Assembly (NCBI GenBank): GCA_965112735.1
Contig: OZ218952.1
Span: 1,488,001 to 1,552,000 of the forward strand
Source: Phaeosaccion multiseriatum
Taxonomy: Eukaryota; Protista; Ochrophyta, other classes
DNA length: 64,000 bases
Direction: 5' to 3'
Shown here: positions 33,239-47,361 of the stretch, one piece after another
Layout of the letters: each line of letters starts with the position of its first letter
Position numbering within the stretch: the stretch's first letter is position 1
Program-made: the position numbers and the translations under genes
The notes under the pieces: model-generated
What the model was told of the DNA's origin: nothing
What the model saw: the letters and a program-made list of their open reading frames with translations, nothing else
Databases searched by the model: none

Positions 33239-33781
33239 GGTGCGACCTCCTGGCTCTCAGCCCCTTGTTTAATCCAATCCCTCCCTCCTCTTTCCTCTGC
33301 CGTGGCAGCGTGCTGCTCCCTCTGTCGGCCTCTGTCCTCCCTCCTCCTTTCCCCCTCAAACTGCCATGCCCTACTCCCCTCCCTTTGACTATCGGCCGCC
33401 CTTGCCGCACCAACAGCAGCAACACCCTTTCTAACGCCGTTCTGTGCCGCAATCCTCCCAGCAAACCCCTCCTTAGCGTTGCTATCTCTGGCTTACGCTC
33501 CAGCACACCAACGGCCCTTTTTTCTTTTTTTCAAGATTCAGCCTCTTCCTTAAAAGTCGAGGAGTCCCACTTTCCTTGACTTCATTCCTGCGAAAGTGGC
33601 GAATCGGCGGCAGCCCCTTCATCACAAAAATGATAGCAGGTTTGGGGAGCAGCCGAGTGAGAGAGAGACACACACAGAAACAAAGAGAAGAGAGGAGGGA
33701 GGGGGGAACGGGCAGGGAAGGATAGAGTCGAAGCTATAGAAGCAGCAGGCACTAAGTGTTTGTGTTGTGACGCAAGTGGAT
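33239..33781. promoter_or_regulatory. Putative bidirectional promoter between SMC2 and RAD16-like
   Basis: 543 bp between two divergent ATGs (33238 minus, 33782 plus); inferred from geometry only. Confidence 0.5.
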
Positions 33782-35870
33782 ATGGCGGGAAGCGGCGGCG
33801 GCTCGAGCAGCGCGCCAAACAAGAGTCCTATTGTAATCGACGATACAGAAGAAGTAGAGACTATTGATGTTGACGATGAAGAAGATGCAGAGAAGGCCCC
33901 TCCAAAGTATCGCTATGTTGTGGAACTTGCCAAGAGTAAGAGGGCAGAGTGTCCACGCTGCGAGGAGAAGGTGGATAAGAATGAGATCCGGATCGGGATG
34001 GTGACACAAGGATCCTGGGGGCCCTCCACCAAATGGTCGCACCTCAAGTGCACAATCTTTCAGGTCGCGTCGGCCGAGCAAGTGGAGGGCTACGACGAGC
34101 TCTCGGCGGAGCATCAGGCGCTGGTCACCAAGCGGATCAAGGAGAGCCAGGGACAGGTCGACCCGGACCTGCAGCCCATTGACCCCGACGACCTTGTGCG
34201 GACCCAATGGACGAAGAAGCAGGACGAGCCGGACCAGCTCACCGCGTCCCTGCTTCCTTTCCAGAAGGAAGGCCTGGCGTGGATGTGCCACCAAGAGAAG
34301 AGCGAGTACAGGGGGGGCATCATCGCTGATGAGATGGGCATGGGCAAGACCATTCAGACCATCGCGCTCATGCTGGCCAACAGGGCCAAACCCGCTGACA
34401 AGAGCGAGCGCAAGGCGTGGTCGGCGCTCGAGGAGAGTATGGAGCGCGAGCCGGATGCCTCTCGCAGGGGCAAGACACTTGTGGTGTGCCCTGTGATTGC
34501 GCTCCTGCAGTGGAAGGCGGAAATAGAGCGCTTCACGGAGGAGGGTGCACTGACGGTGGCCATCCACCATGGGAACAAGCGCTCTACGGACGAGGACGAT
34601 CTGCTGGACGCCGATGTGGTGCTCACCACGTACTCCATCATCGAGGCGGAGTTCCGCAAGATGACGGCCAACGAAAAGGTGGCCTGCCCCGACTGCAACA
34701 GGCGGCTGTACCCAGACAAGATGATCCAGCATCGAAAGTACTTCTGCGGGGAGAAGGCCATACGGACTGCCGCTCAGTCCAAGACGGAGCGCCGCCCCAA
34801 GAAGAGGGAGCGCAAGGGGGGGGACGCTGATGATGATGAGCAGACCAGCGGGAAAGGGAAAGGAGGTGGGGGTTCATCGTCTGGGTCAGGTCAGACGACC
34901 AAACTTCCTTCTTCCAGCAGGAAAGCAAAGGCAGGGTCTACCGCTGTCAAGGGTACGCACGCAGATGAGGATGACGACAAGGACGACGAGGACGACGAGG
35001 AGGAGCAGGAGGGCGGCGAAACGGGCACTACGACTGCGCTGCCCGGTAACAGTCGGGGAAAGAGGAAGGGCAAGGGCAAGGGGAAGGCGCCCAAGGCCGG
35101 GGAAGAGAAAAGTGGAGTCAAAATGACCTCCATCCCCGCTCGCAAGGGGGGGGGGGCGTGGGGGACAGGGGGGCAGTAGTGGGAGTGGTGGGGGTCGAGG
35201 CACAGGCACCACCACCATGTCTCCGCCAGCAAAGAGCAAAGCAGCAGCGAAGAAGAAGAAAGGCAAGGGCAAGCGGAAGCGTGCCGCGGAGGAGGAGGAG
35301 GAGGACTCGGACTCGGAGGGTCATGGGGACAGCAGCAGCGACATCAGCAGCGAGGATAGTGCCGACGACTTTGAAACCACTTCGTTTTCGCGCAAACGTG
35401 ACAAGGGCGGGCAGAAGAAGGACAACAAGAAGGTCAAGACGACGACACTGCCGAAGAAAGGGAAGGGGGGCGAGACCGACAAGGGCATGCAGAAAATGAA
35501 GAAGAGAAAGAGCGTGAAGCGCAAGCGAAAGGGGGGAGGGAGGGGGGGCAGCAGCGGCGGTGGCGGTGGGGGTTACGACAGCAACAGCGACAGTAGCTTC
35601 GAGGGGGGGGGGAGCGACGACAGCGATGAGGAAGAGGAGGAGCTGGACAGCGAAGAGGATGAGCTCACGGTCAAGCTGTACGCCACAATGCAGGCAGCGG
35701 GGCCCCCCAGCGTGCTTCACGGCGTGTCTTGGCACCGCATAGGTAAGTCCGCCGTAAGCGGGCCTTTTTCTCGTGGTTTTTTCCCATGTTGGGTCCACCC
35801 GCTTCCTTCTCGGCGGGAGTGGGCCGAGGGGAGGGAGGAAGAGCCCCCCAAGCGCTTGCACTTTCCCTTT

Positions 35871-35919
<49 letters not shown>

Positions 35920-38029
35920 AGTATTTGGACTCCTTTGGGAAGACTCTTGTTGACGCGTGTTGCTTCGCGCTTCCCATATCCTCTTTGTGTGTGTGTGTGT
36001 GTGTGTGCGCGCGCGCGACACTGGTCAGTGCTGGACGAGGCGCACTACATCAAGGAGAGGAGCACCAGCACGGCCAAGGCCACCTTCGCGCTGACCTCCC
36101 TATACAAGTGGTGCCTCACGGGGACACCGTTGCAGAACCGCGTGGGCGAGCTGTACAGCCTAGTGCGCTTCCTCCGAGTGGACCCTCATGCCTACTACAA
36201 TTGCCGCAAGAAGGGCTGTGACTGCAAGAGTCTCAACTACCGCTTCGGACTCGAGGGTCGCTCGTGCGAGCAGTGCGGGCATGGCAAGATGATGCATTCG
36301 TGCTACTTTAACAAGCACATTCTCAACCCCATTCAGAGGACCGGCCCCATCGGAGAGGGCAAGAAGGCCTTCTTACACCTCAAGCAGGAAGTACTCGATA
36401 AAGTGCTGCTCAGAAGAACCAAGGCTTCGAGGTGAGTGAGGCCAAGGGAAGAGGAGGAGGAGGAGGAGCAGGAGCAGGAGGAGGAGGAGGAGGAGGAGGA
36501 GGAGGAGAAGGAGGAGGAGGAGGAGGAGGAGGAGGAGGAGGAGGAGGAGGAGGAGGAGGAGGAACGGATAAACGGAACGGGGAGATTGTGAGGTCGAGAT
36601 GGTGGTGCAAGTACTCAGGTGGAGACAGATGGGATCGAGCCGGTGAGAAACAATAGCCTTTCGTGTGTCTTGCTTGCCTCTGTATTTTCATGCCATTCAT
36701 ATCCTCCAATTGCTTGGCTATACTTGAACGCTCCGACTTGACTGTACCACCGCAGGAGTGAGGATATTTGCTTGCCTCCGAGGGTGGTGAGGGTGAGGAG
36801 CTTCCGACTGGACCCCGTGGAGGAGGACCTCTACAAGGCGCTGTACACGCGTAGCAAGACGCAGTTCAATACCTACGTCGACCAGGGGGTCATCCTCAAT
36901 AACTACGGTGAGCGAGTAGGACGTACTTGACCATCACACCCATTGAGCTCCACGATCCTCCTCCTGCTGCTGCCCTGGCTGCTTGTGCTCTTGTTTATAG
37001 TCCTCACACTTCGATCTGTCCTCCGTCCTCTGCTCTCTACCTTCTGCCCTCTGCCGCCCTCTGCCACCCTCTTCCCACTGTCCCCTCTCCTCCGCCCTCT
37101 GCTCACTGCCCGCTACCCTCTCTATCCTGTCGTCTGTGGATCCTCCCGTCTTGCTTGAATGGTCCTCTCCAGCGCACATCTTCGCATGCCTCTCCAAGCT
37201 CCGCCAAGCAGTGGACCACCCCTACTTGGTGGTGCACAGCAGCAGCAGCAGCGAGGGGGGCGGGGAGGCCGCATCAGGGGGTGGCTACTCAGGAGGAGCC
37301 GCCGAGAAAGACGTAGACGGAGACGGAGCAGAACCCCGGGACTGCGCCGTTTGCGACTCACCTGCGGAGGACGTGTTGCGCGCCAGATGCGGGCACTTCT
37401 TCTGCCGCGGCTGCGTGGAGGAGCTGCTGGCAGGCATGGGAGACGCGGGTGCCTTGGAGTGCCCGGCCTGCTCGGAGCCCCTCACCGTGAACCTCAACGA
37501 GGCCCCTTCTGCTGCTGCCACTCTTGTATCACCAACTGGTGGTGGTGGGGCGCGGGTGCGGAACGAGGACGAGGTGGTCGTGCCGGGCCTGCCCGACGGG
37601 ATGAAGCTCACCAGCATCTCCAAGAACTCGGTCATCAGCAAGGTGGGTTGGTGGGTGGGTGGGTGGGTTGGTGGATAGGTGGGAGGGAGGAGGGAGGGAG
37701 GGTGGATGGGTGGTGGGGTGGGGCGTGGGGCGTGGGGGTATGGGAAATTGATATTTTGTTGTGGGCTTGTTTCGTTGTGTGTCTTAAGTGTAAGAGTAAG
37801 GTGTGGTAGACCCCCCCCCACCACCACCTCCCCTGGCCCCCTTCTCCTCCGGTCATGACGCGGTACGGGGTGGGTGACGAGCAGCAGAATGTACGGTGCA
37901 CCCTGGGGTTGGACTGTCGGTGGTACACCTCTTCCCTCGTTTGTCCTCCGAATAGAACCATAACAAGCTTGCTTCCAGACTAAACTAAAAACAAGTTTCC
38001 AATCTGTGGCGCATGCATGCCACACTCAC

Positions 38030-39075: not shown

Positions 39076-40239
39076 TCAGCGGGATTCAACCCTGGCCTTG
39101 ATTGGGTAGGTCATGGGGCCCGTGTTCTTGATGATGATGGTGCATCCGTAGCCAGGAGTCTCGAGCACTGCAGAAAAGGGGCGCATTGCTCCGTCATCAG
39201 TAGAGACCTCCGCTAGTTGTCGCAGACTGCCGGGGCCTTGCAGAACCTCGACAGTGGCCTGGATGGGCAGGCCCTCGGACCAAAGTGAGATTCGCACGTT
39301 GTTCACAGAGGCATGAACGGGAAAGTATTGCAGGGAGTCTCCTTGGATAGTGCGTCCATAACCTCCTACAGCACCGCCATAGGAACCGTGGAAACCAGAG
39401 CCGAAGCCGGAGCTATAGCCAGAGCCGTAGGAGCCGGAGCCGTAGGAGCCGGAGCCGTAGGAACCGGAGCCGTAGTGGTGGTGGTTACCGTGGAAGCCGG
39501 AAGAGTAAAAGCTGCCGCTGCCACTGCCTCGGCCACTACCACGCACACCGGCCGCCAATGGGAACTCCATAGGCCCACCGTTTCGAATCTCGACCACGCC
39601 TCCTCGACCCCCGGGTGTGTCAACAATGGAGCGGAAGGGGCGGGCAAGTCCGTCTTCGCTCCAGACCTTGATCCGCTGGGGCGCGTGGTTGGGACCTTCC
39701 CAGACCTGAAGATCAGCGGTCAGGGGTGTTCCGTTCGTCTCTAAAAGCACTTGCTGCTGCTCTTGGTTGTAATGTCTACCCCATGAGAGGCGAGAGCCTC
39801 CCTGCATTTCCTGGAGTCCGTCGCGGCGTCCTCCCCAGAAAGATTGCCGGCCGCCAGCATAGGAGTTGTGGCGGTACCCGCCCTCGCGATAGTTGTCGCG
39901 GCCTCCACCCCAGAAGGACTGTCCGCCGTGCTGCTGAAGGCCATAGCCGTTATTGTCCCGCCGGATGATGCTCCCCTGCGACCCGACGGTGTTGATGTTG
40001 CGGATGCGCTCGTTCGACCTTGGCTCGTAGTACTGTTGCTGGCCGTTGTAGTTGTAGCCACCAATAGGCGTGGCCTGTCGAACAACGCTGCTCACAGCGT
40101 TGTTGACATTGTGGTGCCGTCCTTGGTTCTGGTTACTCTGGTAACGATCTGTGAAGGTCGTAACCTGAGAAGGAGAAAAGGCGGTGGCCTGGTGCCACAC
40201 GCAGAAGGCCAGGACACTCGCGAGGTAGGTGTTCATCAT
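39076..40239 (-). CDS. Intronless PyShell (pyrenoid shell)-like protein: bipartite plastid presequence, G/Y/N/R-rich extension, two tandem homologous beta-rich domains
   Basis: Signal peptide then ATA|FSP (ASAFAP-like). Internal duplication: MQGGSRLSW..QVLLETNGTPLTADLQVWEGP..IKVWSEDGLARPFRSIVDTPGG..EIRNGGPMEFPLAAGV versus IQGDSLQYF..VRISLWSEGLPIQATVEVLQGP..EVSTDDGAMRPFSAVLETPGY..IIKNTGPMTYPIKARV. This matches my recollection of the diatom/haptophyte QGGSLRTW..GRPL..GP..RPF..ETP..N..EFP family that I associate with PyShell; not search-verified. Confidence 0.7.
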   Translation of the reverse strand: MMNTYLASVLAFCVWHQATAFSPSQVTTFTDRYQSNQNQGRHHNVNNAVSSVVRQATPIGGYNYNGQQQYYEPRSNERIRNINTVGSQGSIIRRDNNGYGLQQHGGQSFWGGGRDNYREGGYRHNSYAGGRQSFWGGRRDGLQEMQGGSRLSWGRHYNQEQQQVLLETNGTPLTADLQVWEGPNHAPQRIKVWSEDGLARPFRSIVDTPGGRGGVVEIRNGGPMEFPLAAGVRGSGRGSGSGSFYSSGFHGNHHHYGSGSYGSGSYGSGSYGSGYSSGFGSGFHGSYGGAVGGYGRTIQGDSLQYFPVHASVNNVRISLWSEGLPIQATVEVLQGPGSLRQLAEVSTDDGAMRPFSAVLETPGYGCTIIIKNTGPMTYPIKARVESR

Positions 40240-41281: not shown

Positions 41282-41510
41282 GCTGCCGACCCCTGACGTA
41301 CTACCTGGCTGCTACCGCTGGTGTCAGCCGGCCTTTGACCCCCTACCGGCCGACCCCCTGACGTGCTAGCTACCGAGCGATTCTCAATAGCATGCTACCG
41401 GGCCCTCCGCACCCGGTAGCACACTACTGGCGGCCGGCCGGTAGCAGGTAGCACGCCAGGTCACGCCAGCGGTAGCAGGTAGCAGCTAGCTTACGTCGGC
41501 GGTGGCAGCT
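41282..41510. mobile_element. Foldback/MITE-like element with nested imperfect inverted repeats
   Basis: TGCTACCGCTGG (41310-41321) pairs with CCAGCGGTAGCA (41466-41477). Outer GCTGCC..GACGTA pairs with TACGTC..GGCAGC. Central hairpin TGCTACCGGG-9nt-CCCGGTAGCA (41393-41421). Confidence 0.5.
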
Positions 41511-42336
41511 GATGGACTGGTTGGCCGGCCGGCCGGTCGAGCAGAGGCCTTGGCACGGGGAGAGGGGATGCCTGGGCTCGCCGAGGAGCCTTCCGAGCGG
41601 CAGAGGCAGGGCCAGCGAGACCCGCGGGGGAAGGGGGTAGTCTGGCTGCTAGGAACGGTGGGCCGGTGGGCTTGAGACTCCAGGCTAATAGCTAGGCCTT
41701 GTACGGAGACTAAGGCGACATGGAGAGAACTCTGTACGTCCTACTAGTCGGTGTGCCTCCCGCCGAGGGCATAGCCCGAGGGAGGCTTGTGTTACACTCC
41801 CTGGCTCTCCGGGGTGGTGTGGAGTGTCAAAGAGTGTTGTGTGCTAAGCATGTTGGAATCCGTCGCCCGTCGCCTCTTGGAAGTTTGAAACTACACCCTT
41901 CTAGTCGCAGGTGATGGATGGATTGGAAAGTATGGTGAAGGTTGATAGGCAACAACAAGAACATGATCTTCCCTCCGCTGGTGGTAGTCTGGAGTGTGTG
42001 TAGCAACACCCCATCATCAGCCAGGAGTATCATGCATTTTTTCCGACTTTTATTCCTTACGTACTGCTCAGTGTGAGGGGACTTGCTCCTTGGGGAGGGA
42101 GAAGAAGAGGAGAAAGACGAACACGAGGAGGACGAAGATACGTGGGCAAACACCATCACTCACTTCTCTTTTCGCCGAGCGATTCCCTTGCCGGATAAAA
42201 CAAACATTACGTAAGGGTTCTACAACCCAGGGGGGTTTTGTCTCGTTCACGCTGACGAGACCTTCAAGCTTAAGTCCAGTTTAAAGGCTTTAGGGGGACT
42301 CAGCCTACTACACCACCGACTGGACCACAGCCAACC

Positions 42337-43317
42337 ATGAAGGCCTTCCTCGGGAGTCTCCTGTCGCTCTGCGTGTGTCTGGGAGTGGTCACTGCATTGA
42401 ATGTCGGTCAGCAGACGACCTTTAGGCTTGACAATGGGTGGGGTGGATATGGCCCCCGTAATTCTGTCGACCAAGGCATCTACTACGGGAACGGGCTGAA
42501 TCGATACGGGGGGGGGGGCTATCGCAACAACTATGTGGACCGTTCCTACGGCTACGACCGCTACGACGATTTTCCTAACGACAGATGGGGTTACTACAAC
42601 AATGGGCGATACCAGCCCAGGAGAAGGGAAGACTTGCTCAGGAATGTCAACACTGTAGGCCAGGGCACCACAATCACGCTCGCCAACCCTGGATATGGGA
42701 GATCGGGGTACGGCGGCGGGTACCACAACAATTATGATCGGTACGACTCGAACAGGTGGAGGGAAGACAACAATCGGCTGGCGAGCTTCTGGTTGGCCAA
42801 TCCTGTGGACCGAATCAACCGCGGTGGCTACAACAATGGTTACTACAACAATGGCTACAACCAGCTGAACAGCGGCGGTTACAACCGCAATGTCAATACG
42901 ATTGGCAACCAGGGCAGCATTATTCGAAGTGGCTATGGCAACTATGGCAGCAATTACTATGGGCCCGGCTCAAACCAGTACTGGGGCTCCAACTCTTACG
43001 ACGGCGGGACCTTCCGCGGGGAGACGTACAACTTGTACCGCGGCGGGAACTACTATGGCAACGGCTGGGGAAATCAGTGGGGAGGGAACGGGTGGGGCAA
43101 CGGGTACGACTCGTACAACAATTACCGAGGCGGCAACTATTACGGCAACGGGTGGGGGAACGATTACAGGGGAGGGCCATACCGCAATGGCTACAACAGT
43201 GGGTACTACAACAATGGGTACAACAATGGGTACTACAACAATGGCTACAACAATGGCTACAACCGCGGGGGGTTCTGGGGACCAGACCGAGGTGGAAACG
43301 CGCATCTCCTCTACTGA
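42337..43317 (+). CDS. Intronless signal-peptide protein, almost entirely G/N/Y/R/W low-complexity (prion-like); candidate pyrenoid/condensate protein
   Basis: 326-aa ORF in a good ACCATG context. MKAFLGSLLSLCVCLGVVTA|LNVG signal. Repeats GYYNNGYN, YRGGNYYGNGWGN x2, RNVNT[VI]G.QG x2. No globular domain. Confidence 0.85.
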   Translation: MKAFLGSLLSLCVCLGVVTALNVGQQTTFRLDNGWGGYGPRNSVDQGIYYGNGLNRYGGGGYRNNYVDRSYGYDRYDDFPNDRWGYYNNGRYQPRRREDLLRNVNTVGQGTTITLANPGYGRSGYGGGYHNNYDRYDSNRWREDNNRLASFWLANPVDRINRGGYNNGYYNNGYNQLNSGGYNRNVNTIGNQGSIIRSGYGNYGSNYYGPGSNQYWGSNSYDGGTFRGETYNLYRGGNYYGNGWGNQWGGNGWGNGYDSYNNYRGGNYYGNGWGNDYRGGPYRNGYNSGYYNNGYNNGYYNNGYNNGYNRGGFWGPDRGGNAHLLY

Positions 43318-46042: not shown

Positions 46043-47361
46043 ATGGCGGAGGCGGCTTTAGACATTGAGGTAAGATCTCTTCTGTGGGGAGTCCCGGCCC
46101 TTCGCCTTGAGGCCCAGCCTATTTTCTCGTATATGTATGCATGTTCCTCCCCTTTGTATCCATTGGTCCTGGCGCCCTACCCTTGGGTCAAGGCGAAAGC
46201 TCACGGCCTCCCGGGCCTCCCTCCTTGCCCTGGTCTGCACAGGGGGTGCGACTTGGTGAGGCCATAGTGATGGGGGCGGCTGCAGCAGAGGTCAAGGCGA
46301 TGGTGGCGAAGCTCGTCTCCAAGACGGGCAAAGCACGCCTGGACAAACCGATAGATACGTTCGGATGTACCGCGATGACCATGGCGGCGGAGATTGGTCG
46401 AGCAGACTGTATGGATATCCTCGTCTCAGCTGGAGCGAGTGTGGATCAGGCGGATGGTGTTGGACTCACTCCGCTCTTTATCGCATCTCGGGCCGGATTT
46501 CTCTCAGTTGTGGAGGCGCTTCTTTCGGCCAGCGCCAGTGTGCATTCGTTATCTCAGAGGACCACTCCGCTCTACATAGCTTCTGCACGAGGGCATGCTG
46601 CAGTGGTGGGGGCACTTCTTTCGGCCAAGGCGAATGTGAACTTGATGGACGAGGTGGATCGATGCACTCCGCTTTGTATCGCGTCTCAGGCGGGTCACGT
46701 GTTAGTGGTGCATCGCCTCATCTCAGCAGGCGCACTCCTCGATGGAGGCGACAGTTCCGGAGGCACTCCGCTGTACTCCGCTGTGAATAATGGGCAGGCA
46801 GCGGTAGTGGACAAGCTTCTGTCGGCTGGTGCCGGAGTGGACGCGATGAATTGCGAGGGTTGGACTCCTCTCGTACTCGCCTCTATGACAGGCCACGATG
46901 AAATAGTGGAGCGGCTTCTCCGTGCTGGTGCGAAGGTGGATTATGGGGGGGCCCGCTTTGGCTTCACCCCTCTTCACTTTGCTGCTCGCTATGGGCACGG
47001 GGCAGTGGTGGCCCGTCTTCTCGATGCAGGGTGTCCATGTGATGTGTTGGCCACGTGTGGCTCTCCCCCATTACTCGCTGCCGCCGTCGCTGACCAACAT
47101 GGGACGGTTCAGCAGCTCCTCTCCGCCGGAGCCTCGGTGGACATTGCCCTGGCCTGTGTGCAGCAGAATGATGAGTACCCTGAGGCCGAAGGTACGAAGC
47201 AGAGCCTCCTCGCCGCAGCAAGGGAGCACTTCGCATCGCAGACTGCCCTGGACCTGATGCGCGCAACCGACCCCACCTTTGGCAAGGAGAGGGGCGTACC
47301 GCCGCAGGAGAGGGACGTTCACTCTGAGACCATGCTCGAGGTGGCTTTGGAAATGGCCTAA
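46043..47361 (+). CDS. Ankyrin-repeat protein; short exon 1 (46043-46069) + exon 2 (46243-47361)
   Basis: About 8 repeats of G.TPL..A...G...VV..LL.AGA.VD. GTAAG donor at 46070 and CAG acceptor at 46242, in frame. Confidence 0.9.

Follow-up and report, generated by a model that had tools for sequence, protein, structure and literature searches.

A disordered, tyrosine-rich candidate scaffold protein encoded head-to-head with a pyrenoid shell gene in Phaeosaccion multiseriatum

Which proteins tie the Rubisco matrix of a pyrenoid to its shell in algae with red-type plastids? Those that bear the shell protein PyShell contribute a large share of ocean carbon fixation, and in them Rubisco condensation and a tie between matrix and shell are known only for PYCO1, from one pennate diatom. 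The question arises at a locus of the ochrophyte Phaeosaccion multiseriatum, within a stretch of 64,000 nucleotides (assembly GCA_965112735.1, contig OZ218952.1, positions 1,488,001 to 1,552,000 of the forward strand; hereafter the window). A single-exon open reading frame (ORF) in this window, the target gene, encodes an orphan disordered protein rich in Gly, Asn, Tyr, Arg and Trp, and divergent from it lies a gene for a PyShell protein, PyShell-C3. An original prediction, made from the letters of the window, had suggested that the target is a plastid matrix scaffold and possibly a linker of Rubisco. Our analysis leads, with a probability of about 0.42, to a related reading: the target would be a pyrenoid-shell-associated, PYCO1-like, disordered and prion-like scaffold, and, without a domain of its own, a paralogue of the PyShell-C3 N-terminal arm.

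Target protein, PyShell neighbour and shared motif

PyShell-C3 is a bona fide member of PF25192 (DiatomPyrShell, the diatom pyrenoid shell protein) and stands head-to-head with the target, the two start codons lying 2,097 bp apart. It belongs to a set of three PyShell genes in the genome, all of them single-exon like the target, and the other two are without G/N/Y-rich regions. AlphaFold2 (AF2) folded the two β-sheet halves of PyShell-C3 confidently (predicted local distance difference test score, pLDDT, ~90) and left disordered an N-terminal arm of ~120 residues and a G/S/Y loop of ~55 residues. In TpPyShell1, the N-terminal 68 residues are unresolved (10.1101/2023.10.25.564039). The arm of PyShell-C3 was matched to the target by BLASTP with compositional adjustment on (E 8e-6 over 90 aligned residues), and local alignments between the two scored z 6.6 and 4.9 over composition-matched shuffles. 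These alignments indicate that the arm is homologous to the target, which looks like an expanded, free-standing version of it. The similarity centres on RNINTVGSQGSIIR in the arm, which pairs with RNVNTIGNQGSIIR and RNVNTVGQGTTITL in the target. The target itself lies outside PF25192: a Pfam search returned 0 families at E up to 10, and the two β-sheet regions are absent. If the 5′ end of a gene is duplicated in inverted orientation, a head-to-head layout results, and such an event may have been the origin of the target.

The two proteins share a motif, RN[VI]NT[VI]GxQG[ST]II, which begins at residues 21, 102 and 184 of the target and has one further copy in the arm of PyShell-C3. The spacings in the target, 81 and 82 residues, fall within the range of 20-120 used by FLIPPer, and the copies form aromatic-free aliphatic islands in its chain. 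When both strands of the 67-Mb genome were searched with a degenerate DNA pattern for N[VI]NT[VI]G-x(0,1)-QG, three occurrences were found, all in the target and PyShell-C3, and a reversed control gave 0 occurrences in the same 67 Mb. A derivation of the motif from the PyShell hairpin ETPGYGxTIxIxN is a lead at most, as the weak resemblance was not significant (hhalign against the PyShell alignment, probability 2%). A complex prediction for PyShell-C3 residues 60-387 with target residues 172-212 scored 0.00, which is evidence for neither side.

The motif copy at target residues 184-197 differs from that of PyShell-C3 at 14 of 42 nucleotides and at only 3 of 14 residues (P ~2e-5). Similarly, the two YRGGNYYGNGWGN copies within the target are separated by 7 nucleotide differences, 7/7 of them synonymous (P ~5e-6 for random substitutions). 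An old divergence of this kind, with the peptides preserved, requires long-term translation and selection. The frame opens at an ATG and is intact over 326 codons. Its GC content at the three codon positions (GC1/GC2/GC3) is 0.47/0.46/0.73, similar to the 0.60/0.51/0.68 of the PyShell neighbour, and the overlapping alternative open frames created by the target repeats show no third-position GC peak. Four public DNA runs, all from one sample, contain the target sequence with zero differences. Judged from the sequence, the target is a real coding sequence under peptide-level constraint. DNA depth in the four runs is uniform across the target, its neighbour and the spacer between them; a short dispersed repeat inside the spacer (~41384-41557) has a contig depth 3-5x that of its flanks in 4/4 runs, and assemblies break there.

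Behind a 20-residue signal peptide, the target consists of a chain of 306 residues (34.8 kDa) that is basic (calculated isoelectric point, pI, 9.3) and contains no Lys, Cys or Met. By composition, G accounts for 21.5%, N for 17.5%, Y for 14.7%, R for 8.6% and W for 3.1%, and G, N and Y together reach 54%; the mature chain has 64 aromatics and 28 Arg, and the protein has 57 Asn. This is the composition of prion-like or FUS-like domains, which are polar and rich in G/N/Q/S/Y, with aromatic stickers and Arg over Lys. AF2, run without alignment input, gave a pLDDT <50 and no secondary structure over residues 28-326, and the sole helix (residues 4-19) coincides with the signal peptide. Taken with the absence of a Pfam domain, this makes the target largely disordered in the sense of FLIPPer. 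The original prediction had described about 300 residues with internal duplications and no globular domain, and had proposed a disorder prediction as a check. Its description agrees with what we found, namely 306 mature residues without a Pfam or NCBIfam family, disorder throughout in the AF2 model, two copies of YRGGNYYGNGWGN and three of GYYNNGYN. It had also described the Tyr, Trp and Arg residues as evenly spaced, which proved true in part. Over the whole mature chain, where three aromatic-free segments interrupt the pattern, the aromatics are spaced no more evenly than in shuffles (z 0.2), but with these segments removed they are more even than in 98.4% of shuffles.

The target had further been called an orphan, and every search agreed. 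Neither Pfam nor NCBIfam yielded a family, and a six-frame search of the 67-Mb genome with the target returned only the target itself, hence no paralogue by this search. In 5.8 billion clusters, a word-seeded search yielded no match with E ≤0.001; phmmer, run exhaustively against 1.84 billion representative proteins, likewise yielded none, and a search of PDB chains gave noise only, with nothing significant. In the ESM Atlas, a feature search retrieved only arthropod low-complexity proteins at chance-level scores. Four proteins (the target, two PyShell paralogues and rbcL) were looked up in a 15-billion-protein collection, and all were absent from it. Part of the target's orphan status is explained by its source alga, an ochrophyte for which the searched databases contain no close sequenced relatives.

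Targeting, proposed mechanism and known systems

The signal peptide of the target has a basic n-region (MK), a 16-residue hydrophobic core, Val at -3 and Ala at -1. Predicted cleavage after VTA places Leu 21 at +1, where a bipartite (ASAFAP-type) presequence carries F, W, Y or L; one of these is needed for ASAFind to call a plastid protein with high confidence (PMC12136025). Among the four accepted residues Leu is the weakest, and it permits plastid import of the target without proving it. The segment that follows, LNVGQQTTFRL, had been taken for a short transit peptide; this was a misreading, as the stretch after the 20-residue signal peptide is the degenerate first copy of the thrice-repeated motif. 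The presequence of PyShell-C3, ATA followed by Phe, is of the classical type of complex red plastids. Its signal peptide and that of the target both have 20 residues and both end in TA, and in both proteins QxTTF follows at the same offset (LNVGQQTTFRL in the target, FSPSQVTTFTD in PyShell-C3). N-x-S/T sequons are absent from the target (0 vs 4.1 expected among 57 Asn; P 0.008), which fits a chain that crosses the lumen of the endoplasmic reticulum (ER) while staying unglycosylated. On balance, plastid import of the target appears favoured, mainly because the N-terminal region in its entirety has a paralogous counterpart in a shell protein.

These features allow a mechanism to be proposed. The signal peptide would lead the target into the ER, and cleavage after VTA would bare Leu, one of the residues allowing import into a complex red-type plastid. 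The 64 aromatics and 28 Arg, set in Gly/Asn spacers without Lys, would promote self-association or co-condensation, as might be expected because they follow the grammar of Tyr/Arg stickers known from condensate formers of the FUS and PYCO1 types. Condensate-forming prion-like domains have many Tyr, Trp and Arg residues in Gly/Asn-type spacers, with Arg over Lys. The three aliphatic motifs, which are under purifying selection and otherwise present only on the flexible arm of PyShell-C3, may be specific stickers for a partner that this arm also binds; candidate partners are the canonical shell lattice, Rubisco or the motif itself. The target could thereby act as a glue or coat joining the PyShell-C3 shell subunit to the matrix or to adjacent material, a role that we propose from the G/Y-rich disordered decorations that PyShell-C3 itself carries.

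To judge by the likenesses, PYCO1 is the closest characterised protein to the target. PYCO1, the Rubisco linker of Phaeodactylum tricornutum, is disordered, with a pI of 10, ~80-residue repeats and a prion-like domain, and its stickers, Trp in KWSPR and Tyr in GTGYNP, serve Rubisco binding and self-association (PMC10288592). With it the target shares a putative bipartite presequence of a red-type plastid protein, disorder, a basic character, a period of ~80 residues and Tyr/Trp stickers, and the short G/Y/N self-association motif of PYCO1 (GTGYNP) is a further point of likeness. However, there is no sequence similarity. KWSPR/Q and GTGYNP are missing from the target, which is without Lys, and its repeat is an aliphatic, beta-looking segment in three copies, whereas that of PYCO1 is a W-centred linear motif. 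Centric diatoms lack PYCO1, and so do further groups, many PyShell-bearing algae among them (10.1101/2023.10.26.564148).

EPYC1, CsLinker and SUPA1, the Rubisco linkers of the green lineage, are, like the target, disordered and multivalent, with repeated stickers 20-120 residues apart. However, they use short helices as stickers and have spacers without aromatic enrichment; homology to the target is absent, and they belong to another targeting system and another Rubisco form. In Chlamydomonas and Ulva, one motif is common to linker and structural pyrenoid proteins (PMC13655443; 10.64898/2026.07.16.738900). The prion-like domains of the FUS family and the mussel foot proteins are cationic, rich in aromatic residues and condensate-forming, and they combine Tyr/Arg stickers with Gly-rich spacers and Arg over Lys; the comparison with mussel proteins has been drawn for PYCO1 as well (PMC10288592). 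They differ from the target in compartment and in an RNA-binding or adhesive context that it does not share, and the target is Asn-rich rather than Ser/Gln-rich.

G/Y-rich tails and adjacent genes at other PyShell loci

We aligned 24 PyShell homologues, many of which carried G/Y/N/W-rich tails or arms at the N- or C-terminus. Examples, many of them from diatoms, are Seminavis robusta P0017, Cylindrotheca P0012, P0006, P0014 and P0018-P0023. G/Y-rich sequence is thus, on this alignment, a recurrent appendage of the PyShell family; a limited search of the PyShell literature found no discussion of these tails. The composition of the tails (Seminavis robusta P0017; P0006, P0014, P0018-P0023) is G/Y/N/W-rich as in the target, but the target is free-standing, has no PF25192 domain and is much longer than any tail.

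We then looked for separate ORFs rich in Gly and aromatic residues at 85 PyShell loci, 84 of them foreign and one in this window; flanks of 2.5 kb or more were present at 24 of the 85. Among the 24 informative loci, two further ones, L013 and L058, had a separate G/Y-rich gene with a signal peptide within 1.6 kb. The product at L013, which comes from AT-rich, diatom-like DNA, begins with MKLFAVVALVLTVVCSLVSTVSA, has Y at +1 and continues with 190 G/Y/N/R/W-rich residues; it contains RRLGW[DN]R twice, and LGWAR in the N-terminal arm of the L013 PyShell protein has LGWxR in common with it. The product at L058, from an alga of 65% GC, combines a hydrophobic N-terminus with a G/Y/M/R repeat (GGMGGYGGMGRYGG and similar). 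The GC3 of this ORF (0.85) is like that of the adjoining PyShell gene and unlike that of overlapping frames, supporting the frame; near-identical PyShell copies at L082 and L085 are without such an ORF. The foreign G/Y-rich chains measure 190-210 residues. Like the target, both are signal-peptide proteins with a G/Y/R-rich low-complexity chain, encoded beside a PyShell gene, but they have no homology to it, their repeats and orientations are different, and one is Met-rich instead of Asn-rich. A homology between the target and the L013 protein was rejected (BLASTP E 0.08, compositional resemblance only), and a shared-word test was non-discriminating for such low-complexity sequences. For background, 164 kb of flanks >4 kb away and 118 kb of other DNA of this genome contained 0 strong G/Y-rich ORFs; the background as a whole came to about 340 kb, likewise with 0 strong hits. 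A degenerate GY-GY-GYG DNA pattern, meant as a genome-wide background, was swamped by a 7-bp satellite (GGGTATG / GGGTATA), arrays of which lie on all large contigs (e.g. C5:4346371-4346483, C3:2068764-2069076 and C2:3389690-3389830).

The pattern of a PyShell gene with a G/Y-rich neighbour is suggestive. It is conceivable, though on the whole doubtful, that PyShell algae without PYCO1 build their pyrenoids from lineage-specific, free-standing G/Y-rich prion-like proteins that are encoded beside specialised PyShell paralogues and dock via a private peptide common to the flexible arm of the shell subunit. The target would be the clearest such "shell-arm mimic", acting as shell-matrix glue or as the missing Rubisco linker, and an ochrophyte, a diatom-like organism and a GC-rich alga would each have acquired the pairing on its own. 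The target locus offers a concrete candidate: the gene is small and single-exon, and its defined motif of 14 residues is common to a shell subunit. If the pairing were general, it would provide a genomic rule for finding scaffolds without sequence homology, and added parts for building pyrenoids in crops. The features discussed are listed in Table 1.

Table 1. Location of the target, its PyShell neighbour and related features (window positions unless a locus or contig is named)
Feature	Residues	Position	Strand	Basis or remark
Target gene	1-326	42337..43317	+	Single-exon ORF, 326 aa + stop; orphan G/N/Y/R/W-rich disordered protein
Signal peptide, MKAFLGSLLSLCVCLGVVTA	1-20	42337..42396	+	Read from sequence; inferred cleavage after VTA, Leu at +1
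Motif copy 1, LNVGQQTTFRL	21-31	42397..42429	+	Alignment; degenerate
Motif copy 2, RNVNTVGQGTTITL	102-115	42640..42681	+	Aromatic-free aliphatic segment
Third GYYNNGYN copy	168-175	42838-42861	+	
Motif copy 3, RNVNTIGNQGSIIR	184-197	42886..42927	+	11/14 residues identical to PyShell-C3 copy
Two YRGGNYYGNGWGN copies	234-246, 263-275	43036..43161	+	With W/G/N-rich stretch between
GYYNNGYN runs near C-terminus	289-305	43201..43251	+	Copies at aa 289 and 298
Spacer between divergent start codons		40240..42336	.	2,097 bp; possible shared promoter region
PyShell-C3	387 aa	39076..40239	-	Pfam PF25192, E 5.6e-57; signal peptide ending ATA then F
PyShell-C3 disordered N-terminal arm	21-142	39814-40179	-	
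PyShell-C3 motif copy, RNINTVGSQGSIIR	80-93	39961..40002	-	Sole copy outside target; within disordered arm
PyShell-C3 disordered loop	237-295	39355..39531	-	G/S/Y-rich; between conserved halves
PyShell paralogue (L005)		G000:C1:5374950-5375600	+	
PyShell paralogue (L007)		G000:C8:573088-573738	-	
G/Y-rich gene at L013		L013:10766-11407	-	1.5 kb downstream of, and convergent with, PyShell homologue P0007 (L013:8001-9284:+)
G/Y/M/R-repeat ORF at L058		L058:10933-11571	+	206 bp past stop of PyShell gene L058:9887-10726:+

A gene 2.8 kb downstream of the target (window 46141-47361, + strand) encodes ankyrin repeats, and in an unrelated contig a further ankyrin gene (L015:10904-11299:+) directly follows a PyShell gene on its downstream side, perhaps by coincidence.

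Alternative readings and wider genome

Two features make the target probably a new pyrenoid scaffold: its gene and a pyrenoid-shell gene are arranged head-to-head, and the two encode a common peptide that is unique to them within the genome. Several observations nevertheless weigh against the specific reading as a shell-associated, PYCO1-like scaffold. All 5 other plastid presequences read in the same genome have Phe at +1, vs Leu in the target (most N-termini of light-harvesting complex, LHC, genes are split by introns; the two usable LHC presequences both have Phe). Asp stands at +12 of the target, in a transit-peptide region where acidic residues are usually absent and whose first 15 residues are almost free of them (PMC12136025); PyShell-C3, with Phe at +1, likewise has one Asp, at +11. 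The public read runs with the locus were all DNA contigs (4 runs, one sample), with no RNA found among them, and the searches gave no relative of the target that would show conservation across species. AF2 predicts no structure at the motif, either in the target, which was run without alignment, or in the PyShell-C3 arm. The enrichment of G/Y-rich genes beside PyShell genes stands at ~P 0.06 against a small background, and the target, L013 and L058 proteins are mutually non-homologous.

Some of these points bear on where the protein goes. It could be a secreted structural protein of a wall, cyst, scale or adhesive, with tyrosines oxidatively cross-linked and the similarity to the PyShell arm a relic of local duplication without shared function. 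The target has a classical signal peptide, Leu rather than Phe at +1 and the acidic residue at +12, and eukaryotes commonly secrete structural proteins rich in G and Y. However, its homologous N-terminus sits on a protein with a canonical plastid presequence, the motif is under purifying selection in both genes, N-glycosylation sequons are avoided, Cys and Lys are both at 0, and G/Y tails recur on PyShell proteins. The extracellular alternative raised by the original prediction is weakened by the plastid-presequence paralogue, the sequon avoidance and the selection on the motif, and we consider it unlikely, though deserving of attention. It is improbable that Leu makes import inefficient, so that the target is held in the ER, a periplastidic or another endomembrane compartment with a function unrelated to the pyrenoid. 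Such a fate would agree with the uniform Phe at +1 elsewhere in this genome and with the report that periplastidic and plastid proteins differ mainly at this position (PMC12136025), but Leu is among the four residues that ASAFind accepts (PMC12136025), and the PyShell-arm homology and shared motif argue for co-location.

Other points bear on what the protein does. As a Rubisco matrix linker, the idea of the original prediction, the target would use its repeated motifs or W/R repeats to bind form ID Rubisco and cross-link holoenzymes, and the PyShell-C3 copy would anchor the shell to the matrix, much as a common Rubisco-binding motif does in Chlamydomonas. The genome codes form ID Rubisco together with three PyShell genes, and the target has the basic pI (9.3), the repeat length and W/Y stickers of PYCO1 (PMC10288592) and the disorder and repeated elements at 20-120 spacing that FLIPPer-type criteria describe (10.1101/2024.04.09.588658). 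It is also in keeping with the logic of Chlamydomonas that a disordered, multivalent protein has a motif in common with a structural protein of the pyrenoid (10.1101/2023.10.26.564148). Yet there are only three motif copies, of which one is degenerate, neither KWSPR nor GTGYNP of PYCO1 is present, and all the evidence ties the target to a shell paralogue, not to Rubisco; a linker role, though attractive and neither supported nor refuted here, looks quite unlikely. Of the plastid matrix scaffold first suggested, the pyrenoid link gains independent support from the PF25192 neighbour, the arm homology and the genome-unique motif; of a tie to Rubisco and one to the shell paralogue, the latter is indicated more directly. 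There is, finally, a slim chance that the target is a young lineage-specific duplicate, barely or not expressed and functionless, produced by inverted duplication of the PyShell-C3 5′ end and repeat expansion. Its orphan status in every search, the lack of RNA among the public runs with the locus and the head-to-head layout would suit this origin, but the repeat copies show heavy synonymous divergence with their peptides kept, and the 326-codon frame is intact with a gene-like GC3.

The plastid rbcL is of form ID, and its best named matches (89-91% identical) are to Vaucheria, Chrysoparadoxa, brown algae and raphidophytes. The PyShell family has been reported in diatoms, haptophytes, pelagophytes, dictyochophytes and some alveolates; three PF25192 paralogues in an ochrophyte with an rbcL nearest those of xanthophytes, brown algae and raphidophytes may extend its range. 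In red-type plastids, rbcL and rbcS are normally adjacent. Between rbcL (L008:1432-2892:-) and rbcS (G000:C18:86571-86867:-), the plastid contig G000:C18 has a Lys/Glu-rich ORF of 266 residues whose identity is not obvious (L008:453-1253:-), and the same arrangement is present on C21. Near-identical LHC (PF00504) genes form tandem arrays at G000:C9:474910-521083 and G000:C15:1683723-1700707, the former consisting of two inverted blocks of six and five copies ~4.5 kb apart. Within the window, positions 33767-36435 (+ strand) look, from translations only, like a multi-exon DNA-repair helicase gene with an N-terminal zinc-finger-like part, SNF2-type motifs and CT-/GT-rich introns. This helicase-like gene is split by introns, and the genome therefore has introns, although the target and PyShell genes are single-exon.

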